Positions 1 through 55,650 are shown, counted from the stretch's first letter. The stretch: 64,000 nt of DNA from Oikopleura dioica (GCA_907165135.1 OU015567.1:868001-932000); one strand, 5' to 3'. The notes: generated by a model from the sequence alone, not told the origin. Numbers and translations: made by a program.

Positions 1-330
1 TTTTTGCGTCAGCGAATCATCGTAGAGAAAGCTCTAACCCTAACCCTAACCCAAATCCTTACCCTAAGATACGCCTCTCTTCGGCTTTTGCCCACCCTAG
101 TCATCCTCCTTCCCCGGAAAAAATCAAACCTTACCTCTTGGATTATGCAAGCCATAAGCGTAGCACTGACTATCGCCCCGACAGGAGATGCCAAACGGAT
201 CTAGTAGTATTAATATAAATCATGACAAGTGATTGATGAAAGCTGACTGTACTTGATTCAAATCGAATGTGCTGATTGTCGATGTTCGCTTTGCCCCACA
301 TAAATTGACCAGAAGGCTCGAACTTAAAAA
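1..330 (-). CDS. 5' exons of an unknown multi-exon gene (gene X), continuing beyond the window start; paralog of 17139-17906
   Basis: GT-AG introns predicted at about 199-250 and 35-133. Exons read MWGKANIDNQHIRFESN|PFGISCRGDSQCYAYGLHNPR. Two differences from the second copy are synonymous in this frame. Downstream frame unresolved. Confidence 0.35.
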
Positions 331-420: not shown

Positions 421-2678
421 TTAATAAAATATAGAACAAACCAGGATGCAAGCAATACACCCCCGAATCAAGCAGCAAATGGTGCCAGCAATGCATGTTT
501 TTGCCAGAATCTTCGAAAAGACTTTTTTGCGCTTTGGAGCTAGACCGGCCATGGTTCCGAGCATGATTCCCATGGTCTTTTGAGGGGATGAATATACATT
601 TTTTGGATGGACAAGGGTCAGTTCAACACATCCCGGAATATTCGCGAAACCGCAAAGTGCGTAAGTCATTATCGTCTCGGACAGCTCAGACAGCCACATT
701 TGATTGCCATCACAGTCGCACTTATTGGAAAAAGGTCAGCTCAGAACTCATAGAAAAGTTGATGATCACCTTATCTCGTCCAGATTCCCTGTAACCTTTC
801 GCCGTCGCGAGGGATTGAAATGCCATAAATTCTGTGAAGAAAATTTTTTCCCCAAGCAATCGCGCGCAGAATTCAGCTTCAAAGCTTGGCACTCCTAAGA
901 AAAATCTTCTTCAAATCATCTTGCCAAAATCCTACCCATGAGAAGAACAAATGGGCGAAAAACAACTCCAAATATCTTTTCCAGCGTAATGCTTTCAATT
1001 TCAAACAAGCCACTAAGGAAGACCACAATGTCGTTAAGACACTCGATCGCAGCCACGAAAACAATCAGCATAGCTAAAAACATGAATTAATTATTCAATG
1101 ATATTAATTTTTATTACCAGTTATATTCGCGCAAACGGGAAAAGCATCCAATGCTCCTTGTACTGCAGCGCCAAGGAGATTTTGGCCACCTTTGCTTTTC
1201 TCGTCCTCGGTTTTTTTCGTCGTCTTTTGAAAATGGGCTTCGATTAAAAAAAATGATGGAACTTACGAGTCTCGACGGCGTTACTTCTGGAAACATCAAT
1301 TTTCCCACCATCAGTGATCCAGGGGCGGACATAAACGAGCTTGTTATCAATGCTCTAGCATCAATTCCAAGCTTCAAATAAGCGCCAAGAACGGAACCAG
1401 CGATAGAAGAAAAGCCAGAGGTCATGACGCAGAAGATTTCAGAATAAGTCATGTGGTCTTTTTTCGGGTCGAAAAGAGTCCGAAATACCAAATTAAAGGT
1501 TTGTCAAACCCTGAATCTATGTAGGGCCTAATCAAGAGCGGCGACTCGGCGATGCCAACAAAGATGTTTCCGACGCAGGCGACAGCCTCTGATTGGGAGC
1601 AATTACAAGTTGCTGTCAGCGCTACCGACAAAAGCTGAATGACGAAATCCATGATGCCAATGTGATAAAGCATTGAAATCAAGGAAGAAAAGAAGATGAT
1701 CACGGGGCAGACGCCAAAGACGAAATTTGTCAGGTCTCCTTTGTATCCTTTTTAATGATTTCGAAGGTTGCTTTCGGCGAAAAAACCTCGATTGAGTTGT
1801 CAAAACCAACGATCCTGAGAACAGAAAAATTCCTCCTGCATCCGCGAATCGTAAAAGAGCCTTGATTGGCTTGCTGGAAAAAATTTTTAAAAATTTTTGA
1901 GTTTTAAAACGTACCTGAAATTTTCAATAAAAACGAAACCAACTTCAGTTTTTATCACAAAAGCAGCGATGAAAAACTGCAGCAAAAAGCCCACCAAGAT
2001 CGGTCGCCAAACGATTTTGATGATGGAAATGCACATGAGCATACAGATAATCATATAAATCACCACTCCAAATGAAGCGACAACAACATTGAATCTGTAG
2101 TCGCTTTTGTAAAGACTTTCGGCGTAAATTGCGAGCATCAGAAAAAGGCCACCAAAAGCCGAGATTTTTCTGACTTGCTTTTTGTCGACTCCATCGAGGG
2201 CAGTTTCGACCTTTTCTTTGTAAAGATCGTATGATTTGATAGCAAGAACGATCAAGTAAAAGACAAGGAGAAAACTTGAAAAGAGGGGTAACAAGAGTAT
2301 TGAAACTCGATTGAGATTTTCCAGAGCTTTTTCAAACCCTTTTCCTGGCTCGCTCGAAATCCGAGTAGCAGGCAAGTCCTATATACGCGCCGACCAGAAT
2401 CATGATCGCTTTTGATGAATGTTTCTTCATCTCCATTATCTTCCCGATGAAATCCCTGATGACCTCTCTTACTGCTAGAATTTTTGCAAAAACAGGATGA
2501 ATACTCCTTTCTTGCTCATCTTCCTCATCTCGAACTTGCGAATCCGCTTCTTCTTGAGTCAGCTCGAGTCGACCAGTAATCGTTGCTTTCTCACAATTAA
2601 AATCAGAGTTCTAGTGCTGACCTTACTTGTCTTTGTCCCCATGTTTTCAGGTTCATCTTCTTGGATCTCTTCGCTCAT
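421..2678 (-). CDS. SLC28: Concentrative nucleoside transporter (SLC28/CNT family), multi-exon, copy 1
   Basis: Exon ORFs contain FSSIAGSVLGAYLKLG..SSFMSAPGSLMVGKLMFPE, NIFVGIAESPLLIRPY and TYALCGFAN, which are hallmark CNT motifs. ATG (MSEEIQEDE) at 2678, short GT-AG introns. Confidence 0.92.
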
Positions 2679-3136
2679 TATTTTATAATTCACAATTTTC
2701 TTGCTAGTGAAATCGTCAAATTCACTTGATTTTATCGATTTTAAAGCGTTGAAATGATTTACCCTTTTGTGTCATTTTGGAATCATAAACGAACATGCCC
2801 GAGGAAAATTTTGATTGGGATAGCGATTGGGAAGCGGCAAGTCAAAGTGACCTTCCCAATCGAGGATTCACCACTGTATTTTGATAATACAGTCGGAGTC
2901 AAAGATAAGGGAAACCAAGAAAAGAGATTTTTGGCTCAAAATGCCGGGATGTTCGTTCATGAAGATTAGTTCTAGAAAAATATGTACCCAATTTTTTTGC
3001 GCGATCTGAAATAATAATTCTCGGAAGTCGTAAGATTACATCAATTGATTTATATTTTATTGCGATCTCGTTCAATAAAAATCTTACCAACTTCTTTTTT
3101 ACTCTTTTTCCGAACCAATTTCGGATAATTTCATCG

Positions 3137-3639
3137 ATGAAGTGCTCGATTATAAGAACAGAGAAAATATGCACTGGCCATCGACTTCATAGGTAGAAAT
3201 AAAAAGTTGATATAAGAAAGACTCCAAGTCAGTTAATTGTTCAGTCCGTTTCTGACAGACGAAGAAAACAGAAAAATCTATGGCAAGTGCAATCACTCTA
3301 ACGGTCACGGTCATAATTACACCATTCAAGCAGTAATTGAGGTGAGCCACTCTTCCTTAGTTGATTTTCTCTGATTTCTAGGGCGAAATCATAAAAGACA
3401 CGGGAATGGTGATGAACCTCGTCGATCTAAAACGGGCCATGTGGAAAGTGCTGTCTCAGCTCGATCACAAAAATGTGGATAAAGATGTCGAATACTTCAA
3501 AAACTTCCCATCTACCGCTGAAAATATTGCCCCGTGGATTTTCACCGAGCTTTCTCAAGAGCTACCGCCAGGCTCTTATCATCTCAAGAAAATCATACTC
3601 GACGAAACTGATAAAAACCGCGTTGAAATCTATGATTAA
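3137..3639 (+). CDS. PTS: 6-pyruvoyl-tetrahydropterin synthase, 3 exons, copy 1
   Basis: Spliced translation MKCSIIRTEKICTGHRLHS|PFLTDEENRKIYGKCNHSNGHGHNYTIQAVIE|GEIIKDTGMVMNLVDLK..LDHKN..STAENIA..ETDKN. Contains HRLH, the catalytic Cys (KCN) and the GHGHNY zinc-ligand motif. Confidence 0.93.
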
Positions 3640-5577
3640 GACCGGTAGTTTATGAATAAAAAGCCTTTTCTTTGATCGAATTTTAAACAGCATCTTTATT
3701 CAATAGATAAAATCAGGGCAATGAAGCCTTTTGAAAGCCTTTAAGGGGTGGTGGTCAAGAAATATTAATATTATTTTTATATTCTTCGTTAAAAAAATCG
3801 TTTTTTATGATCTTCACCTTTATCTTATAAATTCAACTTTGTACTGAAAAATTTTCAATCAAAAGTTCGAAATTTGAGATTTTTTCGAAATTCTTAGTCT
3901 ATGACTTCGTATTTTTGACAATGGAAAAGATATTTTTATTGCATATAAAAGCTTCTTAAGATCTTCTGAATAATAATTTATATTAAAACAAAAAACAACG
4001 ATTTTCTGCGATTTTCGTAAAGATTTGCGTGGAAATTGAATTAAAATAACGATTTTTCAGGAAGTAACATGTTTTCATTCAATTACTATTTTTTTTCTAA
4101 CGATGCGAACTTTATTAAACATAGCCGCCAACACGCTTAAGGGTTTAAACTTTTCTCTTATTTAGTTTTATTTTGAAAAAAAAATGATAAGGGGATAGGC
4201 TATCCCGGATAGCGTTTTTAAGGTCAAGAGATCGGTCCACTTTGCTGCAATTTTTCACCGTTTTTCCGAAAAAGAGCTGCCCACATAGAATGGACCCTTT
4301 TTAACTTATTTACATTGAGAGAATAAAAGTTTTTTTCGAAAAAAAAATTGAGTTTTTTAGGTTGAAAAAAGTCTTAGTCTCGACCAACCCAACTTTAACT
4401 ACAATTGGGCCGTGAAAATAAATGTGGTAATATGATTCGAACTTTTTAATCTGGTAATCGCGTGTTTTTTTAACTGCATAATTGTCTCCTTGCATAATTG
4501 TAAATTTTTTTAACTGCATTTGGGTCACAGGTAAAATTGTATGTCCCACATTCAGAATGTGACATTCTTTAAAAAGTGCTCGTACAGGCTTAATAGAAAA
4601 GGATATTGATTCATAGTGGTTTTTCTGTCAAAATTTATGAAAAAACCACTGAATGACCCTAAGTTTTAGTCCTCTTCTTCAACCTTGCGAACAAGCTCAG
4701 ATTGCGCCGAAAAAGAAGTTAATTTAACCGTCGATTGAATCTTTTTTTAGGGAAATGATTGCTTGTTAATAAAATTTTGAGAAAGAAGTCCGGAAAATTT
4801 GGACAACTGTCGATTTTTTAGTTTCCCACTTAGATGCCTACAAATCTGAAAAATGTCCTGTTATTTAGTATCCGGCAATTCGGAAACAACTGTATACAGA
4901 TGTTTTCCTTCTTTTCTTATCAAAATCTTTCTTTGTCTTTAAGAAAAATTAAGTTAAAGGCTGATCACGTATCCCAAGAATATTTTTGGCTTCGGAAAAC
5001 GAAGTAAAAAGAGAATGATCTAGTTTTCTCTCAAAAAAATTTTTAAGCGATTTTGATGAGATATTTTTCTCAAGAGCATGTATCAAATTTTTGGACATTT
5101 TTAAGAAATCGTGGGACAAAACATGCCAAAAAATTTCATAATTATTTGTTATTTAGTTTGTCAATGGAAGCTGTTGATAAATGATGAGTAACAGCTAGTG
5201 CTTAACCTTTTCGTTTTTATTTGATACTGTTTCAGACCAGAAATTAGTGGTTAAAAAAATAACATCCAAACAAAGGTTTTAGAAATATCAAAATCATGAT
5301 ATTTACGTAATAAACATACATGATGCAAAACTTAACCATGGCCGGCGAAGATTTGGAACCACCCATCATTACTCCGCCCAACGACACGTGCGATAGTTAA
5401 ATCGTCCAAGTTGAAGATTAACAATCCAATAAATAAAAACTAAGTTCAATTCTCAGGTGTCAGGTTGATACATATTTTCTCACGCGACTCATCGGTTTTG
5501 ACACTGGAATTTGAACTTTTTTTTACTAAGTAAGTATTGTTTATTTTGCATCATAAAGAATAAGAGTAAAACGTTTT

Positions 5578-8500
5578 TTAGTTAATTTCACAATCATATC
5601 CATTGTTTTCATGACCGGTACATGTTTTTGCTTGCTGATTCTTCTCGCAGCATGTTTTTTGCGCTGCCTGAATCAAGCCGACTTTTGGGATGAATAAATG
5701 AAAGAGGCAAATTCCGCATATGACTGTGAATCCAATCGATACTGGCACAAAATCTCCATTTTCAACGCTATTGGAATCACCGAGAATAAGTCGAAAAAGT
5801 GGATCAATAAGCCACATGGTTATTAATGAAGGAGCCATAAGAATGCCATCTGGGGTCGGCAACCTGAGTACAGGGTCAGGCTCAGGGTCAGGGTTCGAAA
5901 ATTTTTTCTCGAAATTTACTCAGGAACTCAGGTCAGGGTTTTTCACTCAGTCAGGTACTCAGGCAAACAGGTCAGGCCTGCTCAGACTCAGGTACTCAGG
6001 TCAGACTCAGGGGCCTGACTCAGGGTAAAACACAGGGTTTTTACGACCAAGTTCACACTTTAAAATTATAAACTTTTCGTTTTGCCCAGATAACTTTCAA
6101 CCTGACAGTCCTGTAATCGGAAAATCCCCATAATGATGGAAAATCAGTGTAATTGGACCCCCCGACGTTGCTAATTGAGCCTTTTTAGTACTTTTTTAAG
6201 GTAACTCAGGCCCTGTGTGAGCAACTCAGGCCTATCTTTTAACTAAGGTCAGGGTCAGGCTCAGGGTTTTTTTTCTCGAGTCTCGACTTTACTCAGGCAC
6301 ACAGGTCAGGGCCTGTGTACTCAGTACTCAGGGGCCTGAGTCAGGGTTTTTCTCAGGTCAGGTTGCCGAGCCCAGAATGCCATAGAGTGTTGCATAATGT
6401 TGAGCGGGAAACATGGTTAATAGAAACTGAAAAATAAAATAGAATAGAAACTTAACTGAGGACTTACTAAATGCGGAGAAGCGTAAACAATTGTCTTTGC
6501 GATAGAAAAAATTATTATCAGCGCGTAAGCGTTTGCATTGTCGTCAAATGATTTCGCCTCAAAAAAGTCTTTTTTTGAATAGAAGTTTTTCTTACTTTAT
6601 AAATCATCTGAGCAGAACAGATTGTGCAGGCGAAGCCAGAATATATCATGATTATAATAAGTGAAACCATTTCTCCATTAATTTTTCCGTTTCTGTTGAT
6701 TTTTTTGCCGATATTGCTGAGTACTTCTGGAAATGTGGCAAAAATTGGTGAAGCAAATAGAAGATAGCCGTAGATTTCGAGAAGATGACTAATATGAGAT
6801 TTAAGTTCGGTCACATCAGCCGAATTTTTTGCGTATGACCATGTCAACCAAGCGTTGATCCAGCCTTATAATGTTAAAAATTTAAAACTAAAAATGAACG
6901 TTACCTTGGATACTTTTTATTCTTGTCGAATAAATTGTAAAAACGACAGAAAAAATTAAGTAAATCGGATTAAAGACATTTTCTTTAATTGATTTTTCTT
7001 TTGAGTTTTTTGTCTTGTTTCTTTCTTCAGATGTTTCCTCAATTGTATTTGCTTGATCGTTAATATTTTTTAATCTGGATATAATGTTGACTTTTGAAAA
7101 CTCGCAAATAGCCCAATCTGCTCCCGGAAAGTCGTAAGGCATCAGAAAAAAGGTTCTTATAAGAGTCACAATTTTAAATTCATATTATGAAATTGCGACT
7201 TTTCTGCTTATTTATTTTTAATATGAATCACAAGAACCTTAATGTTAAAAGAAACTCCGGTCCTTATGTGAACAAAAATCGACAAAGCTGTGAGAATACC
7301 CATCATCATTGCAAGGTTTTCATTTAAAGAAGAAGACAGTTTGCTCATTATCAAAAATGTCGCCACAGATGCATCATAAGTACCGGAAAAAACAACAACA
7401 GAGGCACCTGCGTATTTCCCCATTATTGAAGCACAAAAAGCATTAAGAACCACATAGGCAAGACCAGACCATGCAAAGAGAATGAATCCAGGGAAAAAAA
7501 GAATCTCCGCGAAATTGTAAAGAGACATCAGTAGAAGACCTAGTTTGTAATGACAAAGAGTTTTTTGGAAGGTCAATGATACCCCGATATCCCGATTATT
7601 TTGATATCAGCATTGTTCTTTTTATGATAAAGCAATGATAATATCGATTTAAATATCAAAAAAATTTTATCTTTTTGTCGTTAGTTTTTTGTCGTATTAT
7701 ATAATATATAACTTATATTAATTCATTAAATGAAAATATTCAGTATTTTTATACGTTTACTCTTCACAATTTAAGGAGGGGGTCGACGAGAATCGGAATT
7801 TCCGTGACCAAAAATGCGGAGAAACCTGCCTCGATAGTAAAATTTTTATGTTTCGGATGGAAAGAAAAGCGTTTGAAAAATCAAAAATGTTTACAAAACA
7901 TCGGTCTAGTGTTCACGAATTTTGCATTTTTGCTTGGTAAGCTTTCATTTACTCCGATTTTTATCTGAAATTAATTTTTTTGGGCAATTTTGAGCTTCAT
8001 TACGATGTTAACCAGGCCATAAACTTTCATTTAAGCATTTAATCAGCAAAATCTAAGATAAAATATTTTCGTCCAAATTTGAGGCACTAGCATTTCCTAT
8101 AGATTTTATATACTTTATCAACTTGAAGAATTCGATCCTTTGGCCAGAAAATGGTTTAAGGGGGTACCTAAACTCGACCTAAGTACCCTTAAAAATGCCA
8201 CGCTCGCCGAATGGGTTAAGCGGTGTATTCTGGCGGGTTAGTGTTTAATCAAATATGAAATACAAGCTATCTTATAAAATAAGTTAATTTTTGATATATT
8301 TTGAAAAATGGTAAATTACAGATGTTTTTTGATCATTTTATTGAGGGATTCGGAGTAAGCCCAGGGATGTAAAGGGTCATCCGTATTCCGGTGGTAGTGA
8401 TGGCAGTATGTAGTAGCAACATGTTACTTTATTTCCAACTCTGGACCATAAACCCCATTTATCGACCAAGGAAGGAAACGGACGTAATTTACACAAAAAA

Positions 8501-9143
8501 GGACCTTTTTTACATAGAATACAGACTTATTTTATACAGATCATAAACGGGAAGTATGCAATTAGCCTGGCCCCAAAACCAGGATTCGACCAAAATCGAT
8601 TTTCCATTTTCTTATGTAAAATATGTCCTTGTTCTATGTAAAATGAGTCCGTTTTACTTGATAATACCCGGTCCGATCACATGCACTCACGGGCAAGGGG
8701 CGAGCATGGGAGGGGAGGGCGGGCGAAATCACGCACCAATCTTGCGGAAAGGTTTTTTTCCTCGAAACATATATAGATTATTTTTACTAACCAAAACTTG
8801 TTATCGAGCCATATATTATTCTTGTCCAAAACATCCCAATTCTTTTCAAAATAAGTCCAACTAAAAGTACTCCAATCGTCATCGAAATGATTGCGACAGT
8901 GAACATAGTGTTGTAAAATTTCAGCGCTTCATTGCAGAGAGACTTGTTGGGACTCCAAATATCGTCCGTTCTATTTGAACATATTGTCGAGTAAAAAATT
9001 CCCTGTGATTTAAGCTCATCTTCAATAAATGAAAATCCAAAAATAACACCTAAAAAAAAAGATTTTAATTTTTTATTTAACTTCCCGATAAACAGGCGCC
9101 CGACGAAGCGCTCAAAAACAGGGTTGGGAGAGAGGGCAACCAT
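5578..9143 (-). CDS. SLC43: SLC43-family MFS transporter (SLC43A3/LAT3-like), the only full-length copy in the window
   Basis: GVIFGFSFIEDELKSQGIFY..C..C..FYNTMFTVA, FSGTYDASVATFLIMSKL and MFPAQHYATLYGILMA match the SLC43 pattern (GVIFGW..LK.EGYF; NGAFDSS; FP.EHFGKLFGL). Multi-exon, MITE in the last coding exon. Confidence 0.8.
5850..6375. mobile_element. hAT-like MITE inside an SLC43 coding exon
   Basis: TIRs CTGGGGTCGGCAACCTGA / TCAGGTTGCCGAGCCCAG, 8-bp TSD AATGCCAT (5842-5849, 6376-6383), subterminal (C/G)TCAGG repeats. Confidence 0.88.
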
Positions 9144-9370
9144 GCGTTTTCAGCCCCGCGCGCAGTGCGAGTTAAAGCTTAAAAGGCTTTAAGCTCCTAC
9201 TTGCATAAGTTATAAAGTCTTAACGGTTATGCTGCATTTCTCTTTTCTTCCATGCTAGTCCGGAAAATGGAATCATACTGTACGTATTTTTAAGCAAAAA
9301 AATTGAAATTGTTGAAAAAAATTGGTACCAATTTTTGGTAATGCAGTACCGAGAATCTTTGGTAATTTAG

Positions 9371-9906
9371 ACGAGCGCCCCCGTCGTCCGGGATATTCGA
9401 CTCTACAGTCTATGTGAACATCATCTTGTTCCGTTTTACGGAAAGGCGTATGTAGGGTACATTCCAAATGGAAAGATTATTGGTCTGAGGTAAGCCATTT
9501 ATATGTATGTATTCTCATTTTTGTCATTTAAGCAAAATTGCAAGAATCGTTGACCATTTCGCGCGAAGACTCCAAGTCCAGGAGCGGCTAACTCGTCAGA
9601 TAGCCGAGACTTTGGAGAAACAACTTTCTGCTCCTGGTGTTGCAGTTATGATCGAGTGCGAGTAAATATCAAATATGAGTTTTAACAGCGAGTTAAACCG
9701 CGTTCGAAATTGATTTTGTAGCATGCGTTTTGCAAAATTTCTTTTATTGCGGACATCTTTTAACCGATATTATAAGGCATATGTGTATGACAATGCGCGG
9801 CGTCGAAAAAGAGGGCTCGAAGACAGCGACATCCTGTATGCTTGGCTGCATAAAAGAAGATCAGAAATTACGCCAAGAATTTCTCTCCCTGGTGAAAAAT
9901 AGATAG
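9371..9906 (+). pseudogene. GCH1: GTP cyclohydrolase I, 3' exons only (first exon missing)
   Basis: Near-identical to 11610-12145 ([36 protein letters not shown]). Upstream it is joined directly to SLC43 5' flank at about 9240-9255. Confidence 0.8.
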
Positions 9907-10561
9907 ATACTGTCTTTTATTGACACGATTTTTTACAATAAAGGGACACTTAAAATATTCTTTTGAAATTTGATCATCGTTGTTGAAAAAATTTTTGAAA
10001 AAACGAATAATTTGTCGCAGTACTTTTCTTTTTGAGCTTAAATCAGGTCAGTTAATCATACAAAAGAAAGTTTTTCAATCTCCATGGATACCAAATGAAG
10101 GAATTATGATATTCCTTAGGTTTAAATACGATTGGTTAGGAAAAAGATAAGTCTTAGGGATTAGGGTTAGGCAAAAGAGCTTTCTGATCCAAGCCCTTTC
10201 TGTCCAAAGCCGCCCTTGGTAAGACCTTCGGGGAGGTTGCGGGGGCTTGGTTACGTTAAGGCTGTTTCAATGACTTATTTTTTGTATCATTAAATTAGCC
10301 TGAACATTACGGTTCGGTTTACTACTTGATCAAAGTTTTTCACCTTGACAAATAATTCGTTTTTTAACCTTACGACCACAAATACCAACGATGCTACAAG
10401 CTCAACAAGGGCTAAGCATGATTTATACGATGAATTTGATGATGGGTCAAACTCAACAGAATCAGCAAAATAAGCTGTTGTAAAAAGGTCAGATCCAATT
10501 TATTTCTTCAGATAGACATTTTTGGAAATTAATAAAAATTTCACTCATTTTTCAAGGGAAA

Positions 10562-10655
10562 TTAAGCATCGATGAGCATTTTTCCATTTGGCTGAGATCT
10601 TCCAAGGGCGATGAAGCAAAGAGAAAGGACTGATTCAGCGCCATCTCTGGCAGTT
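10562..10655 (-). pseudogene. Isolated last exon of the CBR1-like SDR
   Basis: Matches 12629-12722 (TARDGAESVLFLCFIALGRSQPNGKMLIDA*), then fused at about 10660 to the GCH1 upstream region. Confidence 0.7.
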
Positions 10656-11151
10656 TTATTTTCAACTATTGAGCCCTTCATCTTGGTGTTCCATATCAAA
10701 GACTCCGAATGTTAAAATATTAATAAAATAAATTTAACAAACTATGAATAGAGATAATTACCTCCAAAAAGCATAATTTCAATCATCACTGATACAAACC
10801 AGATCAATTGTTTCATCATTTTAAGAAGAAAAATCTCCTTTCTCGTGAAATAAAAAAGGAAATCTCAATAATTCTATCCGTTTTTAATAAGCATTAAGCG
10901 TCGTTTTGGAAAGAAAGTCTGAATGAGAAGAGTCGGATTTTACGATTTTTTGATAACGACCATGAGAAATATCGCCCTGCTTATTATCAAAAAATGAGCA
11001 AGAATGTTTTAGCAACCGAAGTGATTTATAACAATTCAAAATATGAATAAACTCGGAGGCGCTATACATGAGAGTCATGGTCATGCGAAATAATAAGATT
11101 TAAAAAGAAGAACTCAAATCAAATTTTGCTAACATCTTTCTTAATCAAAAG

Positions 11152-12145
11152 ATGTCCGACTCAAATCGAGATGTTGCGAACGCTTATAGAAATATCCTTA
11201 GAAATATCGGAGAAAATCCAGATCGAGAAGGATTGATAAAAACACCAGCAAGAGCCGCAAAAGCGATGGAATTTTTCACCAAGGGGTACAAAGAAGACAT
11301 AAACGATATTATGAATGAGGCGATTTTCACGGAAAAAAGTGAAGAAATGGTGATCGTCCGGGGGAACGCTACTCTAAATTACCAATTGGTAATGCATCGC
11401 CAATTTGGATAATTCATTACCAATTTAAGGTAATGCATTACCAAACTTTCCGAAAATGGCCAATTTTCTCAAGTCAAAGAGCCAGTTCGCGCTCCGCGCC
11501 TGTTTGAAAGGATACTTTTGAGATTTATTTACAGTTTGTTTCCAGAAATTATTGAAAAAAATGGTACCAATTTTTGGTAATGCAGTACCGAAAATCTTTG
11601 GTAATTTAGACGAGCGCCCCCGTCGTCCGGGACATTCGACTCTACAGTCTATGTGAACATCATCTTGTTCCGTTTTACGGAAAGGCGTATGTAGGGTACA
11701 TTCCAAATGGAAAGATTATTGGTCTGAGGTAAGCCATTTATATGTATGTATTCTCATTTTTGTCATTTAAGCAAAATTGCAAGAATCGTTGACCATTTCG
11801 CGCGAAGACTCCAAGTCCAGGAGCGGCTAACTCGTCAGATAGCCGAGACTTTGGAGAAACAACTTTCTGCTACTGGTGTTGCAGTTATGATCGAGTGCGA
11901 GTAAATATCAAATATGAGTTTTAACAGCGAGTTAAACCGCGTTCGAAATTGATTTTGTAGCATGCGTTTTGCAAAATTTCTTTGATTGCGGACATCTTTT
12001 AACCGATATTATAAGGCATATGTGTATGACAATGCGCGGCGTCGAAAAAGAGGGCTCGAAGACAGCGACATCCTGTATGCTTGGCTGCATAAAAGAAGAT
12101 CAGAAATTACGCCAAGAATTTCTCTTCCTGGTGAAAAATAGATAG
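11152..12145 (+). CDS. GCH1: GTP cyclohydrolase I, copy 1
   Basis: [33 protein letters not shown] | [33 protein letters not shown] | [29 protein letters not shown] | HMCMTMRG; zinc ligands present. Further upstream exons are possible. Confidence 0.93.
11360..11622. mobile_element. MITE forming GCH1 intron 1 (larger nested versions at about 32436-33239 and 51160-51820)
   Basis: Inverted ends GGGGG(AA)CGCT..TCTAAATTACCAA / TTGGTAATTTAGA..AGCGCCCCC flanked by direct repeat TCGTCC(GGG), which duplicates the V-R codons. Confidence 0.75.
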
Positions 12146-12628
12146 ATACTATCTTTTATTGACACTATTTATTTTAACAATAAAGGGACACTTAAAATAT
12201 TCTTTTGAAATTTGATCATCGTTGTTCAATGTTTTCAAGAAAATAACAGAAATTTAACAGAAATTTCTGTCCAAAGCCGCCCTTGGTAAGACCTTCGGGG
12301 AGGTTGCGGGGGCTTGGTTACGTTAAGGCTGTTTCAATGACTTATTTTTTGTATGAACAAATTAGCCTGAACATTACGGTTTGGTTTACTTCTTGATCAA
12401 AGTTTTTCTCCTTGAAAAATATTTCGTTTTTTAACCTTACGACCACAAATACCAACGATGCTACAAGCTCAACAAGGGCTAAGCATGATTAATACGATGA
12501 ATTTGATGATGGGTCAAATTCAACAGAATCAGCAAAATTAGCTGTTGTAAAAAGGTCAGATCCACTTTATTTCTTCAGATAGACATTTTTGGAAATTAAT
12601 AAAAATTTCACTCATTTTTCAAGGGAAA

Positions 12629-13975
12629 TTAAGCATCGATGAGCATTTTTCCATTTGGCTGAGATCTTCCAAGGGCGATGAAGCAAAGAGAAAGGACTGA
12701 TTCAGCGCCATCTCTGGCAGTTTTAGGCTAAATTTTATGTTTTCCTTGAAATACTCCTTTCTCACCTTTTTGCCAGGAACTCCAGCAGTCATATTAGTAT
12801 CGCAGAATCCAGGGCAAGCGGAATTTATCAGAATATTTTTTCTCTCAGAAACCGACTTTTTGCCGTAGAGCCGGGGTTTGCGAAAATGGAAGAGCGCGGA
12901 AAGAATATGCACTCGGACGCCCCGTGTTTTTCCCGCCGCAGAAGAGGGTGCTCTAAACTTTTGGGGCGCAAAAAGAAGAGGGTTGGCGCGGCGTGAGCGA
13001 AGTATTCGAGCTCTCGCACGCCAAGCCCTCTTTCAATTCATCCCCGGCGATTGAGCAAATAAAAGGACTTTTTGACACGGATTAGAGCTGAAATCAAGGC
13101 AGGGTACGAAGGATAAAAAGGCCCGAAGAAAGTTTTCTTCCCCCTTTTTTACGAATTTGCCGCATTTTTTCCCCGCGGAGAAGAAAGCGGGCGCCCGAGC
13201 GCAAATTCTTTCCGCGCTCTTCCCCTTTTACGAACCCCTGCCGTAGAGCCGAACGAGATTGTTAACGAGTAGCTTCGACATGTCGTAACCTTAAAATATA
13301 ACTGTATTTTCAACAAGTATTTCTTTAAAAACCGATCATCGACGTTTGTTCTGGACTTGGCCAACCATCAGTTTGAGCCTGAGATGGGTTTTTCTGATCT
13401 TCGATGAATCTTCTGGCAATAGTATCTAACTCGTCGAAAGTTGTTTTCGCGAGTGAACTTCTAAAGAAAAATAAATGGATAAGGTGATCAAAAACTTACG
13501 AAGATAGCTTTTGCCCATAATCAAAGACGTAATTTTCCTCAAAGATGTTCGGATTCGGGTTCAAATTGAGCATTCCTCGCAGTCCGAAAAAGCTGGAAAG
13601 GCAGACAATTCGAGCTCCCTCGCGAGCAAGAGGAAACAGTGATTTTAGAGCAGAAGAAATTCCAAAATAATTGACATCGATGGTCAATTTGATACTCTCA
13701 AATGATTTGTCGTTTATTTCTGGCGCAACACCTGCGTTCAAAACCAAAATATCAAAAGAAGACGGTCCCATCTTCTCTGCAAAATTCAGCACACTTTCTT
13801 CGTTGCTTATGTCTAGCTTTTCGACTTGCAATTTACCGCAATTCTCTATTTCCGGGAATCCTTCCGGGTTTCTCGCTGTCGCCACAATTTTTTTAACATC
13901 TTTCTCTCCAATTAAAAGTTTGACGCATTCAAGTCCGATTCCACGATTTCCGCCGACGACGATTGCAGTTTTCAT
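12629..13975 (-). CDS. CBR1: Carbonyl reductase-like short-chain dehydrogenase/reductase (CBR1/SDR21C-like), copy 1
   Basis: VVGGNRGIG cofactor motif, ILVLNAG, VNYFG, RIVCLSS, catalytic YDMSK, INSACPGFCDTNMT and C-terminal TARDGAESV. Includes the CBR-type helical insertion. Confidence 0.82.
12873..13238. mobile_element. GC-rich MITE with 12-bp TSD inside an SDR coding exon (copies at 35315-35575 and 53502-53868)
   Basis: TIRs GGGGTT..AAAA.GGAAGAGCGCGGAAAGAAT at both ends; TSD TGCCGTAGAGCC at 12861-12872 and 13239-13250. Confidence 0.85.
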
Positions 13976-15083
13976 TTCTTTGTATTTTTTACTTTTGGCT
14001 ATTGAAAAAGCTCAAAAATCGATAAAATCGACGTTTGCCGTGCATCGAAGCTGGTTTACGTAATCATCAACATATAATAATCGTTAAAAAGTTGATTTCA
14101 TCAAGAACAAATTTACTCGACGAGAGTTGAACAGTCGGGAAAATAGTTGATATAAGTTGTGGCTTGGAGTTTTTTGAAAAGCAGAATCGTTAAAAGCTCA
14201 AAACGCATCTTTTTGGAACTTGACTTTGAGAAGTGAGAATAAAGAGCTGGTTTAAAATTGCGTTAACATCGTTTCATGCATCAAATTTAATTGCAAATGT
14301 CAAGGACATATTTGAAAGTTTCGAGAGAGTTTTGACTGAAAATAACGAAATCGGTCGAAATGCACTTACAAGTTGGGGTTAACATTTCGTCCCTCAGTTT
14401 CCGATAAATTTCCAGAACTGCCATTTCGGTTTGAAGATCAAAAAAAAAATTATCCGAATGCGAGCTTGAAATTTCTTAGATACTTCTCAACCAATTATCG
14501 CCAAGCATCCAGAGAAAATAGTTTTTAAGGTGTTGAATTGAGTGTTGACTTCTGAGACGGAAGAACCTGTTTCTTCTATCTGTTTGATATTTTGTCCTGT
14601 AAAAAGTTTAAAAAGGTGACTCTCATTTAATAAAATTGATTTTAAAGCAAAACTCATAAGAAATGTAATAGAATTGATTTAAGTCGGCTAAGTTGAACTT
14701 TCTTCTATCCCAAGCTTTTTATGGCCAGTACAATCATTAAAAAGCCGGCTGCTTAATTTTTCGTAATTGACTTCGCCGAACGTACAAAAAATAAACTTTT
14801 TATCTGTAAGAGATACAAAATTTAAACTTATGTAAAAATGATTTGTGATAATTAATAAATGTTAAAATGAGCTTTATGCAAATTTTTGATGAAAAGTCAA
14901 ATTTGTGTACGTAACGCCGACAAATGCTCGTTATACCGCCTCATTTTTCCAGATGTCAATATGTCTAATATTAAGATAAGCTACACATCGGGAAATATTA
15001 GTTTGACACATTTTCATAATGAGAATAAACGAAAATGAGAAGAATAGGATCTCTGTTATTTTCGTCGATAGAAGCAAAGCGAA

Positions 15084-17080
15084 ATGAACACTACGGTATA
15101 CTCTGATTTTTTGTCGCTTGGAAAGAACATCGAAGAGTTTGACCTGCGACACAATTTCGAGAATGTTGATAAATTTAGACCGCCATATAAGGTAACAGAA
15201 AAGATACTCACAAATCAGAAAAAAAAATTAACTCTTCCTAGTGAAAATCGTAGGCCAGACTTTGTCTAATAATGAATTCAGCTTTCTGTCGGAATTGTTG
15301 TTTTTGGAGTTATTTCAAATCTCAGGAACTGGTCCGATTTTTAGACAGAAATTTTTAATGATGGATTTTCGAGATCGCCCAAAAGTATTTTATACTTCAT
15401 CTTCAAGGACAGTGGAGTCGTCAAAACAGCCCTTGCTCCGTATTATCTCAACAAGAGCAATCGCTCTCGAATGATCGATTTCAACTTCTTCTGGCTCTGC
15501 TCCTTCAGCCTCATGGATTTGCTAGCGCAATCGCTGCTCCTTGGCCAGACTTTTCGGGGCGATTCGTTTTCGGGGCGACTTGAAACTTGCCAGATTGCTT
15601 TGAGCCTCGCTCATTTTTCAAGAATAATGATCTCGATTCAAATATTTTTGATTGCTTGCTACAGACTCAATATTATGACGCAAGGACTGACGACGCGTAA
15701 ACGAATGACGAAAAAGCTTATTGATCAAATTTTCTGCTTTCAGATCTTGGGTGGGCAAGTTTTACCCCTTCTCCAATTGATTCTAGCCCCCATCGGCAAT
15801 GGGGCATTGCCTATCAACTTCGAAGATTTTTGTCCGCCTTAGGCTAGGGTTATCCTAACCCTAACCCTCACCCTAATCCTAGGGTAGCTCTAGAGTGACT
15901 TTTGCCCACCCTAAGTTAGGTGACCCTAGCCATGAATGGACTTTTGCCCACCCCAGGAGAGGGTAATCCTAGCCCTGAAATGACTCTAGCCCACCATAAG
16001 CTAGGACGACCCTAGTCCTAAAGTAACTTTTGCCCACCCTTGTTTTAGACTTATATCGCCATGATCATTGCAGGATACGAAGCCTATGAAGCTGGAAAAT
16101 TCGGATCCAGAGGCTTTTTGACGAAATTGGTACATTCAGGGCAAAATCAAAAGCTCTCCTCGAAATCTTCCTCCGTTATTCGGAATATTATTCCGACACT
16201 CCTCGAAACCTCTCCAATGATGCGCTTTTTGACTCCTACTGCTGGCCAAATTCGAAGAAAGATCCTTTGGTTTTCCGAGACTCTGAATATCGATTCGCTT
16301 TCTATACGATTATTCTTCCAATAAGTGGGCTGATGCTTTGCTACTCGAAAATTGTTTTCATGGTCCGAAAGAGCTACAAACTAATCGGTAACTTTCTTTT
16401 CATTCTTTTTTTTGCAAAAATGATTTGAGATAATGCAACTCGATTGACGAGACAAAACAAGCAACGACTCGACGTTGTGCTAACAAAAAAGCTTGTGCTC
16501 GTTTTTCTGACTTATTCTTTTCTTTCCAGTTTTTCTTACCATCGGTGCTTTTCGACTGTTTCGAGTGGTCAGTGCCTCAAAAAGACAATCCAGCCAAAGC
16601 GATCAAAGACATCGTGCAGCTAAGCTTCTCAGTCCACTCCCCGTCAATTCATTCATGCTTATGATCTACTGATTACATTCGAGCACAACAAGCATATCAA
16701 CTCATGCTTTTAAGCTTTTGCTAAAAACAGTAATAATATATAAGACGGGTCTTGGACCAAGACTCTTGGTTCTTGAAATCGCTTTGCAGCTGCACCGCCC
16801 CGGGAGCTCGCCTCGATCGAGCCCAAAAATTCGAGCGATCCCCCGGGGCTGCGCGCCCAGATTTGATGTTAGATTGGTCCGGAAGCAGCTGAACAGGTCT
16901 TTCTCGGAAATCACCGACGATCTTTTTTTCTGGACCATATTCCGGAAAACACTTTATATAAAAAATACTCGCCATCACCCAAGAAAATTTCTTGTATTTA
17001 AATTTTTCAAAAGGGACAACGTATTCGAAAGTTATTGGAAGAAAACGAAAAATGGCTGCGATAAGCATAGCTATTTTTAA
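15084..17080 (+). CDS. Rhodopsin-class (7TM) GPCR, copy 1; 1-nt frameshift near 16118, 3' end uncertain
   Basis: N-terminal NTT sequon, TM1 LSVGIVVFGVISNL, TM2 CSFSLMDLL, TM3 CQIAL..IACYR (DRY equivalent), TM5 YTIVLPISGLMLCYSKI, TM6-like FFLPSV. GGCTTTTTGAC here versus GGCTTTTTCGAC in copy 2. Confidence 0.65.
15750..16038. mobile_element. MITE with internal CTTTTGCCCACCCT and TAACCC-like repeats inside the GPCR TM4 region (copies at 37981-38223 and 46219-46461)
   Basis: TIR GGTGGGCAA / TTGCCCACC, 4-bp direct repeat CTTG on both sides, roughly 55-bp internal repeat unit. Confidence 0.65.
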
Positions 17081-17138: not shown

Positions 17139-17906
17139 TCAGACCTTTTGAGTTGGTTTCTTGGGGTTTTTAGTCGGCTCTGGGTGCTTTTTTTCCTCTA
17201 TTTTTGCTTCCGTTGTTTGGATTTTTAAGTCACATTGCTAGAAAAGATAATTAAAAACAACGAGAAAAGAAAAAGAACCGGAATCGACATATTCTTCTGA
17301 GGATGATAGACAGTGCAATGCTAAAAAGAAATAAAAATAGCGAAACATTTGGAAGCCTTACCAAATCGCCAACGAATCTGCTCCTTTCTCCAACAGAATG
17401 AACATGCTTGGCGCTTTTGAAATTGTTGCTTTCGACATATTCTCGCTCATTCGCTGAAAATTCCGATTAGATAATGAATTCATCCTTCTAGGGCGCGCCA
17501 ATCCTCGAAAAAATTGGCCAGTGGAGGGTTGTTAAGGGCTTTCTTGGCCAATCAGCGGCCAGTATCTTTTGCGCCAGCGAATCATTGTAGAGAAAGCTCT
17601 AACCCTAACCCTAGCGCTAACTAAAATCCTAACCCTAACCTACCCCTCTCTTCGTCTTTTGCCCACCCTAGTCATCCTCATTCCCCGGAAAATAGATCTT
17701 TACCTCTTGGATTATGCAAGCCATAAGCGTAGCACTGACTATCGCCCCGACATGAGATGCCAAACGGATCTAGTAGTATTAATTTTAATCATGACAAGTG
17801 ATTGATGAAGGCTGACTGTACTTGATTCGAATCGAATGTGCTGATTGTCGATGTTCGCTTTGCCCCACATAAATTGACCAGAAGGCTCGAACTTAAAAAA
17901 AGGCAT
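17139..17906 (-). CDS. Unknown multi-exon gene X immediately downstream of CNT copy 2
   Basis: Series of short introns with good acceptors (TTTTCAG, TTTTTAG, TTCTAG). Last exons read NEREYVESNNFKSAKHVHSVGERSRFVGDL|HCTVYHPQKNMSIP|QCDLKIQTTEAK..QKV*. Phase across the telomere-repeat intron could not be reconciled. Confidence 0.4.
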
Positions 17907-17988
17907 TTTCTATCAGGATATCGTGTCCTCGAATTAATAATTGATCGAAACCGGCTCAATTATGAATTGACACCTAATACAAGCAGAA

Positions 17989-20259
17989 TTAATGAAAGAT
18001 AGAACAAACCAGGATGCAAGCAATACACCCCCGAATCAAGCAGCAAATGGTGCCAGCAATGCATGTTTTTGCCAGAATCTTCGAAAAGACTTTTTTGCGC
18101 TTTGGAGCGAGACCAGCCATGGTTCCCAGCATGATTCCCATGGTCTTTTGAGGGGATGAATGTACATTTTTTGGATGGACAAGGGTCAGTTCAACACATC
18201 CCGGAATATTCGCGAAACCGCAAAGTGCGTAAGTCATTATCGTCTCGGACAGCTCAGACAACCACATTTGATTGCCATCACAGTCGCACTTATTGGAGAA
18301 AAAGGTCAGCTCAGAACTCAATAAACAAAAGTTGATGATTACCTTATCTCGTCCAGACTCCCTGTAGCCCTTGGCCGTAGCCAGGGATTGAAAAGCCATA
18401 AATTCTGTGAAGAAAATTTTCTCCCCAAGCAATCGCGCGCAGAATTCAGCTTCAAAGCTTGGCACTCCTAATAAGAAAATCTTCGTCAAATCATCATGCC
18501 GCAATCCTACCCATGAGAAGAACAAAAGGGCGAAAAACAACTCCAAATATCTTTTCGAGCGTGATGCTTTCAATTTCAAACAAGCCACTTAGGAACACCA
18601 CAATGTCGTTAAGACACTCGATCGCAGCCACGAAAACAATCAGCATAGCTAAAACTCTCATTAATTATCAAAAAAAAAAGATATATTTTATTACCAGTTA
18701 TATTCGCGCAAACGGGAAAGGCATCCAATGCTCCTTGTACTGCGGCGCCAAGGAGATTTTGACCACCTTTGGTTTTCTCGTCCTCGGTCTTTTTCGTCGT
18801 CTTTAGAATTGGGCTTTGATAAAAAAATCCTAACTAAAAACTTACGAGTCTCGACGGCGTTACTTCTGGAAACATCAATTTGCCGACCATCAGTGATCCA
18901 GGAGCGGACATAAACGAGCTTGTTATCAATGCTCGAGCATCGATTCCGAGCTTCAAATACGCGCCAAGAACGGAACCAGCGATGGAAGAAAAGCCAGAGG
19001 TCATTACACAGAAGATTTCAGAGTAAGTCATGTGGTCTTTTTTCGGGTCGAAAAGAGTCGAAAATACACAATTCAAATTTTGCCAAACCCTTAATCTATG
19101 TAGGGCCTAATCAAAAGCGGCGACTCGGCGATGCCAACAAAGATGTTTCCAACGCAGGCGACAGCTTCTGATTGGGAGCAATTACAAGTTGCTGTCAACG
19201 CTACCGACAAAAGCTGAATGACGAAATCCATGATGCCGATGTGATAAAGCATTGAAATCAAGGAAGAAAAGAAGATGATGACGGGACAGACGCCAAAGAC
19301 GAAATTTGTCAGGTCTCCTTTGTATCCTTTTAAACGATTTTGAAGGTTGTTTTTGGCGAAAAAATGCTCGATTGAGGTGTCAAAACCAACGATCCTGAGA
19401 ACAAAAAGATTCCTCCTGCATCCGCGAATCGGAGAAGGGCCTTGATTGGCTTGCTGAAGAAAAAATTTTATGAGAAATATTGAAAATGAAAAACCAACCT
19501 GAAATTCTCGATGAAAACGAATCCAACTTCAGTTTTTATCACAAAAGCAGCGATGAAAAACTGCAGCAAAAAGCCCACCAAAATCGGTCGCCAAACGATT
19601 TTGATGATGGAAATGCACATTAGCATGGAAATAATCATATAAATCACCACTCCGAAGGAAGCGACAATGACATTGAATCTGTAGTCGCTTTTGTAAAGGC
19701 TTTCCGCGTAAATTGCGAGCATCAGAAAAAGACCACCAAAAGCCGAGATTTTCCTGACTTGCTTTTTGTCAATTCCATTGAGGGCAGTTTCGACCTTTTC
19801 TTTGTAAAGATCGTATGATTTGATAGCGAGAACGATCAAGTACAAGACGAGGAGAAAACTTGAAAAGAGAGATAAAAAAATTGAAGCTCGATTGAAATTT
19901 TCTAGAGCTTTTTCAACCCCTTTTCCTGGCTCGCTCGAAATCCGAGTAGTAAGCAAGTCCAATATACGCGCCGACCAGAATCATGATCGCTTTTGATGAA
20001 TGTTTGTTCATCTCCATTATCTTCCCGATGAAATCCCTGATGACCTCTCTTGCTGCTAGAATTTTTGCAAAAACAGGATGAATACTCCTTTCTTGCTCTT
20101 CCTCCTCATCCCGAACTTGCGAATCAGTCTCCTCTTGAGTTAGCTCGAGTCGGCCAGTAATCGTGGCTTTTTCGCAATTAAATTCAGAGTTCTAGTGCTG
20201 ACCTTACTTGTCTTTGTCCCCATGTTTTCAGGTTCATCTTCTTGGATCTCTTCGCTCAT
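17989..20259 (-). CDS. SLC28: SLC28/CNT nucleoside transporter, copy 2
   Basis: Colinear with 421-2678, same motifs; in the exon checked, substitutions are synonymous. Confidence 0.9.
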
Positions 20260-20718
20260 TATTTTATAATTCACAATTTTCTTGCTAGTGAAATCGTCGA
20301 ATTCACTTGATTTTATCGATTTTAAAGCGTTGAAATGATTTACCCTTCTGTGTCATTTTGGAATCATAAACGAACATGCCCGAGGAAAATTTTGATTGGG
20401 ATAGCGATTGGGAAGCGGCAAGTCAAAGTGACCTTCCCAATCGAGGATTCACCACTGTATTTTGATAATAAAGTCGGAGTCAAAGGTAAGGGAAACCAAG
20501 AAAAAAGATTTTTTGGCTCAAAATGCCGAGATGTTCGTTCATGAAGATTAGTTCTAGAAAAATATGTACCCAATTTTTTTGCGCGATCTGAAATAATAAT
20601 TCTCGGAAGTCATAAGATTACATCAATTGATTTATGTTTTATTGCGATCTCGTTCAATAAAAATCTTACCAACTTCTTTTTTACTCTTATTCCGAACCAA
20701 TTTCGGATAATTTCATCG

Positions 20719-21242
20719 ATGAAGTGCTCGATTATAAGAACAGAGAAAATATGCACTGGCCATCGACTTCATAGGTAGAAATAAGATAGAACAAGAGGTT
20801 AAAATAAAGTTGATATAAGAAAGACTGCAAGTCAGTTAATTGTTCAGTCCGTTTCTGACAGACGAAGAAAACAGAAAAATCTACGGCAAGTGCAATCACT
20901 CTAACGGTCACGGTCATAATTACACCATTCAAGCAGTAATTGAGGTGAGCCACTCTTCCTTAGTTGATTTTCTCTGATTTCTAGGGCGAAATCATAAAAG
21001 ACACGGGAATGGTGATGAACCTCGTCGATCTAAAACGGGCCATGTGGAAAGTGCTGTCTCAGCTCGATCACAAAAATGTGGATAAAGATGTCGAATACTT
21101 CAAAAACTTCCCATCTACCGCTGAAAATATTGCTCGGTGGATTTTCACCGAGCTTTCTCAAGAGCTACCGCCAGGCTCTTATCATCTCAAGAAAATCATA
21201 CTCGACGAAACTGTTAAAAACCGCGTTGAAATCTATGATTAA
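20719..21242 (+). CDS. PTS: 6-pyruvoyl-tetrahydropterin synthase, copy 2
   Basis: Colinear with 3137-3639; differs by P>R (IARWIF) and D>V (ETVKN). Confidence 0.9.
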
Positions 21243-22719: not shown

Positions 22720-22898
22720 GATATTAGACAAAAATATTTAAAAATTTCACTGACAGTGTAACGAGAAAAAGAAGAAGAAAAGAACTCTCGCTCTTGCTCA
22801 GAATTGTTTCTTAGGTAATGCTTAGGGCGGATGAGAGCCGGATGGTTTCGGACCGGGCGATGCTGGGCGGCGCAGGGCGGCACAATTCAGTACCCCCC
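22720..22898. mobile_element. Partial inverted copy of the GC-rich MITE at 25903-26337
   Basis: GGGCGGCGCAGGGCGGCACAATTCAGTACCCCCC is the reverse complement of the left end of 25903-26337. Confidence 0.6.
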
Positions 22899-23812
22899 GA
22901 ACTTTTTTATTGAATTTTTGGACATAAAATTTTTGGACATTTTTGTTATCTTAAGGGAACTTGGCACACTTTTATACAGCGCTCATATTAAGTTTTGAAA
23001 TTTTTTCCGCGCTAAAATTCTAATTTTCAGGTTTTTATCATGTACAGTTGGTGTCCTTATTTCCGGACAAATTTCGTCCTGATGCCTAAAAATCTGAAAA
23101 ATGTCCTGTTATTTAGTATCCGGCAATTCGGAAACAACTGTATACAGATGTTTTCCCTCTTTTCTTATCAAAATCTTTCTTTGTCTTTAACAAAAATTAA
23201 GTTAAAGGCTGATCACGTATCCCAAGAATATTTTTGGCTTCGGAAAACGAAGTAAAAAGAGAATGATCTAGTTTTCTCTCAAAAAAAATTTTAAGCGATT
23301 TTGATGAGATATTTTTCTCAAGAGCATGTATCAAATTTTTGGACATTTTTAAGAAATCGTGGGACAAAACATGCCAAAAAATTTCATAATTATTTGTTAT
23401 TTAGTTTGTCAATGGAAGCTGTTGATAAATGACGAGTTACAGCTAGTGCTTAACCTCTTCGTTTTTATTTGATACTGTTTGAGACCAGAAATTAGTAGTT
23501 AAAAAAATAACATCCAAACAAAGGTTTTAGAAATATCAAAATCATGACATTTACGTAATAAACATACATGATGCAAAACTAGACCTTGGCCGGCGAAGAT
23601 TTGGAACCTCCCATCATTACTCCGCCCAACGACACGTGCGATAGTTAAATCGTCCAATTAACAGTCCAATAAATAAAATCAAAGTTCAAGATCAGGTGTC
23701 AGGTGGATACTCATTTTCTCACACGACTCATCGACTTTGACACTGGAATTTGAACTTTTTTTTTCCTAACTAAGTATTGTTTATTTTGCATCATTAAGAA
23801 TTAAATCGTTTT

Positions 23813-55637: not shown

Positions 55638-55650
55638 TAGATTATTTTTA

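Follow-up and report, generated by a model that had tools for sequence, protein, structure and literature searches.

The 64,000-nucleotide stretch of Oikopleura dioica DNA analysed here (the window) is 100% identical to positions 868,001-932,000 of chromosome 2 (OU015567.1) of the Okinawa assembly OKI2018_I69. At its left end lie five neighbouring genes on alternating strands, which encode a concentrative nucleoside transporter of the CNT/SLC28 family (-), 6-pyruvoyl-tetrahydropterin synthase (PTPS, +), a probable SLC43-family transporter of the major facilitator superfamily (MFS, -), GTP cyclohydrolase I (GCH1, +) and a short-chain dehydrogenase/reductase (SDR) of the CBR1 type (-). An earlier reading made without database searches (the sequence-only reading) had proposed that five such genes lie consecutively within 13.5 kb, and all of them were found, as neighbours and in alternating orientation. 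Its identifications of CNT/SLC28, PTPS, GCH1, the CBR1-like SDR and, probably, the SLC43 family held, but the narrower assignment to the SLC43A3 subtype did not, as the matches obtained are at the family level only. Its interpretation found partial support. The sequence-only reading did not mention the tandem amplification, the broken copies, the TIR elements (with terminal inverted repeats) in exons or the derived origin of the PTPS copy.

Gene order and density

The CNT and PTPS genes are arranged head to head, ~460 nt apart. The SLC43-like and GCH1 genes are likewise head to head, and GCH1 and the SDR gene lie tail to tail, ~480 nt apart. The window is on the short arm of chromosome 2, which extends over 1-5.7 Mb; short arms are lower in GC content and higher in repeats (PMC8008620). 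In the OKI2018_I69 assembly there are 17,260 genes, i.e. one gene per 3.7 kb genome-wide (PMC8008620), and therefore five genes in 13.5 kb represent an ordinary density. The coordinates of the genes and of the other features are collected in Table 1.

Enzymes of the locus

The first PTPS gene of the window is intact and matches the Pfam family PTPS (PF01242) with an E value of 4e-16. Among protein structures its product is closest to human PTPS (3i2b, E 8e-36) and rat PTPS (1b66, E 3e-35), the QueD-type chains matching at ~5e-6. The motifs HRL, GKCN..NGHGHNY, LDHKN and ETD, which we take to contain the catalytic Cys and the zinc-binding His residues of PTPS, are identical to those of the human enzyme in the alignment.

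In the first GCH1 copy, exons 1, 3 and 4 match the Pfam family GTP_cyclohydroI (PF01227) at profile positions 2-64 and 95-178, and the zinc-site motifs CEHH and HMCM are present in the 188-residue translation. The reading frame is open only when a 269-nt element with terminal inverted repeats (TIRs) and its target-site duplication are taken out. A second GCH1 locus was sought in an exhaustive search of a representative library with exon 1, where the best match, an environmental fragment, had 68% identity, and in a word-indexed search, which gave short environmental fragments only; both searches leave room for another locus. The GCH1 gene is constrained, with a dN/dS ratio (omega) of 0.07 at a synonymous divergence (dS) of 1.2 in comparison with its orthologue from another lineage (L009).

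Among PDB structures the SDR matches human CBR1 best (1wma, E 1.8e-11), and the alignment continues through the CBR1-specific insert up to DGWPS. The 282-residue translation contains YDMSK and NSACPGFCDTNM and matches the Pfam family adh_short; as in GCH1, its frame is open only with a TIR element, here of 378 nt, taken out. The protein has the signature of the CBR1 type, that is, the Gly-rich cofactor motif, NAG, the catalytic Ser, YxxxK and the insert before the catalytic Tyr. Chains of sepiapterin reductase (SPR) were missing from its PDB matches, both at E <= 1e-6 and among the 60 best at 1e-3. The enzyme is not a member of the SPR family, though it may work like SPR. Carbonyl reductase is accepted as a partial substitute for sepiapterin reductase (PMC4423366). 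Against its counterparts in two other Oikopleura sequences (L007 and L021) the SDR gene has an omega of 0.10-0.11 at dS 0.76-0.83.

A non-coding block ~200-330 nt upstream of the SDR start is conserved in the lineage represented by L021. It contains stops in all frames, and is 86% identical in a comparison in which the SDR gene itself has a dS of ~0.8; it probably serves as a promoter or in regulation and is older than the cluster. The sequence upstream of the SDR gene (13976-14500) also has a 15-mer, AAAATCGATAAAATC, in common with the region between CNT and PTPS (2376-3136). The SLC43-GCH1 spacer lacks the 15-mer, which is probably shared by chance.

Transporters of the locus

Successive exons of the first CNT copy (421-2375) match the Pfam domains Nucleos_tra2_N (PF01773), Gate (PF07670) and Nucleos_tra2_C (PF07662), in this order, and have their best PDB matches in CNT3 (8tzd, 6ksw) and vcCNT (E 1e-13 to 1e-15). 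The annotated product has 729 residues, with both the N and the C domain present, and is encoded from position 2678 to 594 nt left of the window. The left limit of 421 given in the sequence-only reading was accordingly too narrow: the gene is there, but as annotated it extends beyond both that position and the window start. The HP1 nucleoside-binding motif (1449-1703, -) can be aligned with those of CNT3 and vcCNT, but reads G-I-A-E as compared to G-Q-T-E in these two proteins; the AGSVLGAY stretch downstream of it is conserved. The purine-selective CNT2 carries G-M-T-E at this motif. The G-I-A-E variant suggests an altered, possibly purine-type, specificity and may serve as a lead.

For the SLC43-like gene the Pfam search gave no match. 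The best PDB match of one exon is ENBT1/SLC43A3 (9l38), at the collinear position 122-179 and with an E value of 0.16 only, and two other exons had no PDB match. The Atlas cluster nearest to exon 1 is named LAT4-like (score 0.95, 193 shared features), and the remaining Atlas matches are generic MFS clusters. Taken together, these matches make it probable that the third gene belongs to the SLC43 family.

Origin of the PTPS gene

The Okinawa genome has a third PTPS gene, g6273, which is located on the long arm at 8.28 Mb; all four of the other genes are absent within 10 kb of it. Its downstream neighbour is the same as in the Bergen PTPS locus (CBY22524; L016) and in a North-Atlantic metagenome contig (L004), the latter being 97.8% identical to Bergen, and therefore the g6273 locus is the ancestral PTPS locus. 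Homology between the PTPS gene of the cluster and g6273 is limited to ~700 bp at 81.6% identity. As it covers the introns and 128 nt upstream, the cluster PTPS is a DNA-level duplicate of g6273. The homology begins at 3009, so that the last 128 nt of the CNT-PTPS spacer were duplicated together with the gene.

The two PTPS genes differ with a dS of 0.47, a dN of 0.028 and an omega of 0.06, as compared to a dS of 0.71 between the Okinawa g6273 and the Bergen-type PTPS. Most of the divergence is on the branch of the cluster PTPS, which itself has an omega of ~0.07. The O. dioica lineages split ~25 Mya (PMC11067885, Plessy et al.), and we estimate that PTPS was duplicated after or around this split. 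Judged by the omega values, the cluster PTPS is kept by purifying selection while the parent g6273 has also been kept. Capture of PTPS by a transposon was considered and rejected, as there are no credible TIRs beside the 700-bp duplicated segment.

TIR elements in coding exons

Coding exons of the SLC43-like, GCH1 and SDR genes are interrupted by three unrelated TIR elements with target-site duplications. In related Oikopleura sequences the corresponding exons are uninterrupted, for GCH1 in P0033/L009 and L018 and for the SDR gene in L007 and L021. Because the insertions are common to all copies in the window, they are older than the duplications of the block, and the substitutions between copies date from after insertion. 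The GCH1 element measures 269 nt (11362-11630) in the first copy, 810 nt (~32438-33247) in the second and 668 nt (~51162-51829) in the third; these size differences point to nested insertions or deletions after the block duplication. In copies 2 and 3 there is also one extra G at the left junction of the element.

In-frame removal of the elements could be proposed with G*-AG sites. For GCH1 this would use a GG donor directly after an Arg codon and an AG in the right TIR, leaving seven extra residues, and for the SDR gene a GG-AG intron, by which Lys-Lys would become Arg. The exonic elements are candidates for newly gained introns, which would either be of the G*-AG type or take their acceptor from the TIR. 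Non-canonical introns derived from miniature inverted-repeat transposable elements are present in Fritillaria. In OKI2018_I69, 11% of introns are non-canonical (PMC8008620). The situation resembles that of introners, i.e. transposon-derived introns (Huff et al. 2016, as cited in PMC13326754), in that TIR elements with target-site duplications are found in exons of constrained genes and in that the acceptor AG may come from the TIR of the element itself. It differs in that exact removal would here need sites other than GT-AG, or leave small in-frame changes, and in that the case is known from DNA only.

Duplication of the locus

Self-comparison shows segmental duplicates with 93-99.9% identity, which form a mosaic over the full 64 kb. 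Copies of the five genes in the window were counted by means of their exon translations. There are two CNT genes, the second with stops in the middle exons, and two PTPS genes (g4115 and g4118), both intact. The SLC43-like gene is present in one complete copy, a second copy split by a ~3.3-kb insertion and three exon-1 fragments, and GCH1 in three full copies and a partial one. Among the four SDR copies two encode an identical protein of 282 residues, one has an internal deletion and one is truncated. A fifth SDR, g4124, is annotated on chromosome 2 and matches no SDR site in the window. There are two CNT-PTPS-SLC43-GCH1-SDR units in this stretch (units A and B), the block having been duplicated in tandem after its assembly, and the block duplication has a dS of ~0.02-0.08. 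A partial duplicate of GCH1 and the SDR 3' end (9254-10658) is located in the head-to-head SLC43-GCH1 spacer of unit A only; its left part (9254-9984) is closest to GCH1 copy 2 (99.3%).

An ORF of 187 residues is repeated on the plus strand of the window at 28053-28616, 40389-40952 and 46652-47215, one copy being inside the insertion which splits the second SLC43-like gene. It is annotated once, as a gene of 172 residues, and gave no Pfam or Atlas match.

Table 1 Location of genes, duplicated units and elements, numbered from the first nucleotide of the window
Feature	Position	Strand	Basis or remark
CNT/SLC28 copy 1	1-2678, continues 594 nt further left	-	Pfam, PDB, annotation (L022)
CNT-PTPS spacer	2679-3136		Head to head, from gene coordinates; candidate bidirectional promoter
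PTPS copy 1 (chr2.g4115)	3137-3639; exons 3137-3192, 3245-3341, 3382-3639	+	136 aa, intact, GT-AG introns
Probable SLC43-family MFS transporter copy 1	5578-9143	-	PDB, Atlas; contains TIR element
SLC43 TIR element	~5849-6376; TIRs 5849-5867, 6358-6376		In coding exon
Partial duplicate: right part of GCH1 TIR element, GCH1 exons 2-4 (+), SDR 3' end (-)	9254-10658		97-99% identical to 11545-12725 and 33109-33840
GCH1 copy 1	11152-12145; exons 11152-11361, 11631-11728, 11772-11900, 12016-12145	+	188 aa
GCH1 TIR element with 8-bp target-site duplication	11362-11630; TIRs 11362-11385, 11598-11621		In coding exon
SDR copy 1 (chr2.g4116, annotated 203 aa, truncated)	12629-13975	-	282 aa by exon joining
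SDR copy 1 exons	13975-13500, 13460-13333, 13289-13239 joined to 12860-12766, 12727-12629	-	Translation
SDR TIR element with ~12-bp target-site duplication	12861-13238; 67-nt TIRs		In exon 3
Conserved non-coding block upstream of SDR	14160-14303		86% identical to L021 352-497
Unit B	17139-36200	Same order and strands as unit A	Self-comparison, census
Unit B CNT	17139-19962	-	Stops in middle exons
Unit B PTPS (g4118)	20719-21242	+	Intact
Unit B SLC43	23816-30876	-	Broken by insertion ~25902-29248
Unit B GCH1	32228-33762	+	Census
Unit B SDR	35063-36152	-	Internal deletion
Partial units	42669-56100		Self-comparison, census
SLC43 exon-1 fragments	42869-43209, 49132-49472, 55654-56004		Census
SDR exons 1-3 (g4121)	43719-44389		Census
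GCH1 copy 3	50952-52344	+	Census
SDR copy g4123	~53258-54605	-	Protein identical to copy 1

Linkage in other lineages

In three marine-metagenome contigs of Oikopleura (L018-L020, 3.4-4.7 kb) an F-box-like gene is upstream of GCH1, and both the SDR and the SLC43-like gene are absent from the 2.1 kb downstream and 1.9 kb upstream of GCH1. In the 85%-identical lineage represented by L021 the SDR gene keeps its upstream non-coding block and its 3' untranslated region, and is followed by a Q-rich ORF where the Okinawa chromosome has GCH1. As the neighbours differ in these other lineages, there is no conservation of the linkage, and it was in the Okinawa lineage that the block came together. Its formation dates from the time of the split from the Bergen-type lineage or later.

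Discussion

The locus combines genes for pterin synthesis with genes for two transporters of predicted nucleoside or nucleobase type, and the combination has been duplicated. We consider it an even call whether the genes are functionally coupled in a pterin module that was put together and amplified recently. GCH1 and PTPS are certain as enzymes of one pathway, and a place for the SDR in that pathway is plausible. In such a module, imported guanosine or guanine, the predicted substrates of the CNT and SLC43-like transporters, would feed GTP. From GTP, GCH1 and then PTPS would make 6-pyruvoyl-tetrahydropterin in the two committed steps of pterin synthesis, and one or more of the reductions of the side chain would fall to the carbonyl reductase. 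Linkage and amplification would serve dosage, or else the sharing of chromatin or of bidirectional promoters (between CNT and PTPS and between SLC43 and GCH1). The TIR elements would leave the mRNA as new introns, probably non-canonical ones of the G*-AG type.

Taken as a whole, a more elaborate version is attractive, but rather unlikely to be right in every part. According to it, the locus would be a metabolic cluster at birth, put together within approximately the last 25 million years from a PTPS copy, GCH1, a carbonyl reductase in the place of SPR and two purine-type transporters in head-to-head pairs with enzymes. It would have been amplified for a high output of pterins as pigment, fluorophore, antioxidant or cofactor, and its exonic TIR elements would have turned into non-canonical introns.

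Several observations weigh against a coupled module, and some of them speak for neighbours that are merely fortuitous, which we regard as a serious possibility, if a somewhat doubtful one. The genes would then each work, but would have been joined through the very high rate of rearrangement and duplication on the short arms, their co-amplification would be meaningless and the purine and pterin story would be post hoc. Conserved linkage, which had been set beforehand as a test of the sequence-only reading, is absent: PTPS, GCH1 and the SDR gene are all differently placed in Bergen or environmental Oikopleura contigs. In the comparison of O. dioica lineages the short arms had the most breakpoints and repeats and the highest dN/dS, and microsynteny, even that of operons, was not preserved on them (PMC11067885, Plessy et al.), so that neighbourhoods on these arms are transient. 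Tandem duplication copies any sequence that is present, the conserved block upstream of the SDR gene predates the juxtaposition, and no 9-12-nt k-mer recurs in all three of the regions compared, which were the two head-to-head spacers (CNT-PTPS and SLC43-GCH1) and the sequence upstream of the SDR gene. Moreover, CBR1-type enzymes are generalists. When the 17,260 genes were placed in random order, with a 5-gene window, 2 PTS loci and 10 candidate reductases, the figure for GCH1 occurring together with a PTS locus was ~1e-3; by our estimate this pair alone is unremarkable, and is expected somewhere by chance, over all pathway pairs and all scanned genomes. With a candidate reductase included, however, the figure falls to ~5e-6, and both of the remaining genes are predicted to be transporters of nucleoside or nucleobase type. 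Such a set of three enzymes of one pathway and two transporters is hard to obtain by chance, even if post-hoc reasoning is generously allowed for, and the later tandem copies were not counted as independent evidence for the association. Furthermore, an extra PTPS has come to lie less than 8 kb from GCH1, where purifying selection has maintained it alongside its parent gene, and this speaks against fortuitous neighbours. As all five genes are related to purines or pterins, a non-random association and the rarity of the linkage, both put forward in the sequence-only reading, find support in these figures.

Decay of the genes would be a different explanation. The exonic TIR elements would then have inactivated the SLC43-like, GCH1 and SDR genes, leaving a graveyard of decaying duplicates, with the functional genes, if any, elsewhere. 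We consider this improbable, although the exons are indeed interrupted and no exact GT-AG excision was found for the GCH1 and SDR elements, none of the candidates ending in AG when checked position by position over the duplications. The second copies of CNT, SLC43 and SDR and the partial GCH1 are clearly broken, and an LTR (long terminal repeat) retroelement is next door. In the public OKI2018_I69 annotation (loci L002, L003 and L022) there is no model for any GCH1 or SLC43 copy in the window, and the SDR models stop at 203-208 residues, inside or at the TIR element. Searches of RNA-run indexes found neither of the two searched stretches in any run. Three bulk and one single-cell RNA runs, compared with 10700-16500 at >=90% likeness, had essentially no reads, but the lineage of these runs is unknown and the result is no evidence of silence. 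On the other hand, the TIR insertions predate the duplications, and the genes bearing them have since been constrained: with a neutral expectation of 78% non-synonymous changes, GCH1, SDR and SLC43 together have 14.5 synonymous and 15.5 non-synonymous substitutions between copies (omega ~0.30, P = 0.002), and all five genes pooled have an omega of ~0.26 since the block duplication (P = 3e-9 against neutrality), the tests being based on few substitutions and unable to tell which copy is constrained. An omega below 1 since insertion argues against dead genes and for removal of the TIR elements from the mRNA, and together with the values for GCH1 and SDR in other lineages it is evidence of constraint on these genes. 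Once the element is removed, the frame is open in each of the three full copies of GCH1 and in two of the SDR gene, and no other GCH1 was seen, which is a weak negative. It is very improbable that the repeats are an artefact of assembly, with uncollapsed haplotypes or mis-joined Nanopore contigs multiplying a locus that is truly single-copy. The high identity of the units (94-99.9%) would fit this, and duplicated sequence can result from heterozygosity in subtelomeric regions (PMC8008620). Two haplotypes, however, could not account for the copies on the single scaffold, where there are four of the SDR gene and three or more full ones of GCH1, and the units differ structurally in the sizes of their TIR elements, in truncations and in insertions. 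The adjacency of the five genes within 14 kb is far under the read length, and near-identical CNT-PTPS sequence is present in DNA runs of three studies.

The proposed module shares its first two enzymes, both with the signatures of their families, with the animal pathway to tetrahydrobiopterin (BH4), which in vertebrates, Drosophila and C. elegans uses GCH1, PTS and SPR. The genes of that pathway are scattered in these animals, cat-4 and ptps-1 of C. elegans being located on chromosomes V and I, respectively (PMC4423366). At the Okinawa locus, in contrast, GCH1 and PTPS are within 9 kb, accompanied by two transporters and amplified, and no SPR-type SDR was seen at the locus among the PDB matches at 1e-6.

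Amplification of the first pterin-pathway enzyme has a likeness in Plasmodium falciparum, where the copy number of gch1 is raised under antifolate pressure (PMC4005822); that amplification involves a single gene, whereas in O. dioica the unit has several genes. Unlike the bacterial QueD-type enzymes, the PTPS of the present locus is of the eukaryotic type. The two are nevertheless comparable in that a GTP cyclohydrolase I gene adjoins one for a PTPS-family enzyme. In bacteria, folE is transcribed together with queD or ptpS, in operons that serve the formation of folate or queuosine.

Metabolic gene clusters are known in fungi, plants and bacteria, and a few have been described in animals, e.g. 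the terpenoid clusters of octocorals. The O. dioica locus is similar to these in the adjacency of non-homologous genes of one pathway and of transporters, in having received one member through gene duplication, and in being specific to a lineage and located in a dynamic, repeat-rich chromosome region. It differs from them in containing enzymes of primary metabolism rather than specialised tailoring enzymes, in its alternating strands, which do not form an operon, and in being known from its genes only.

To our knowledge, clusters of pathway genes are a great rarity among animals, and their mode of origin is still an open question. Should the genes of the proposed pterin module be co-expressed, the locus would provide a case study in the birth of a cluster with dated steps, from the PTPS duplication (dS 0.47) to the much younger block duplication, and with sister lineages in which the genes are unlinked. 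It might also be an example of an animal in which carbonyl reductase replaces SPR. The three young transposon insertions in exons of constrained genes provide material for tests of intron gain. Should the genes not be co-expressed, the locus would serve as a warning that, in the most scrambled of known animal genomes, conspicuous groups of functionally related neighbours can arise and multiply without having any meaning.

Flanking features

The surroundings of the cluster contain nothing related to pterins on the left side, where no Pfam-recognisable ORF was found in the 5.4 kb next to CNT and the following gene is netrin-like. The ORFs at 14-17 kb were assigned to no Pfam family or Atlas cluster. 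At the right edge of the duplicated array lies the LTR retroelement (56299-64000), which has a pol ORF at 59677-63426 (-) with protease, reverse transcriptase, RNase H and integrase, and further long ORFs at 56806-59626.

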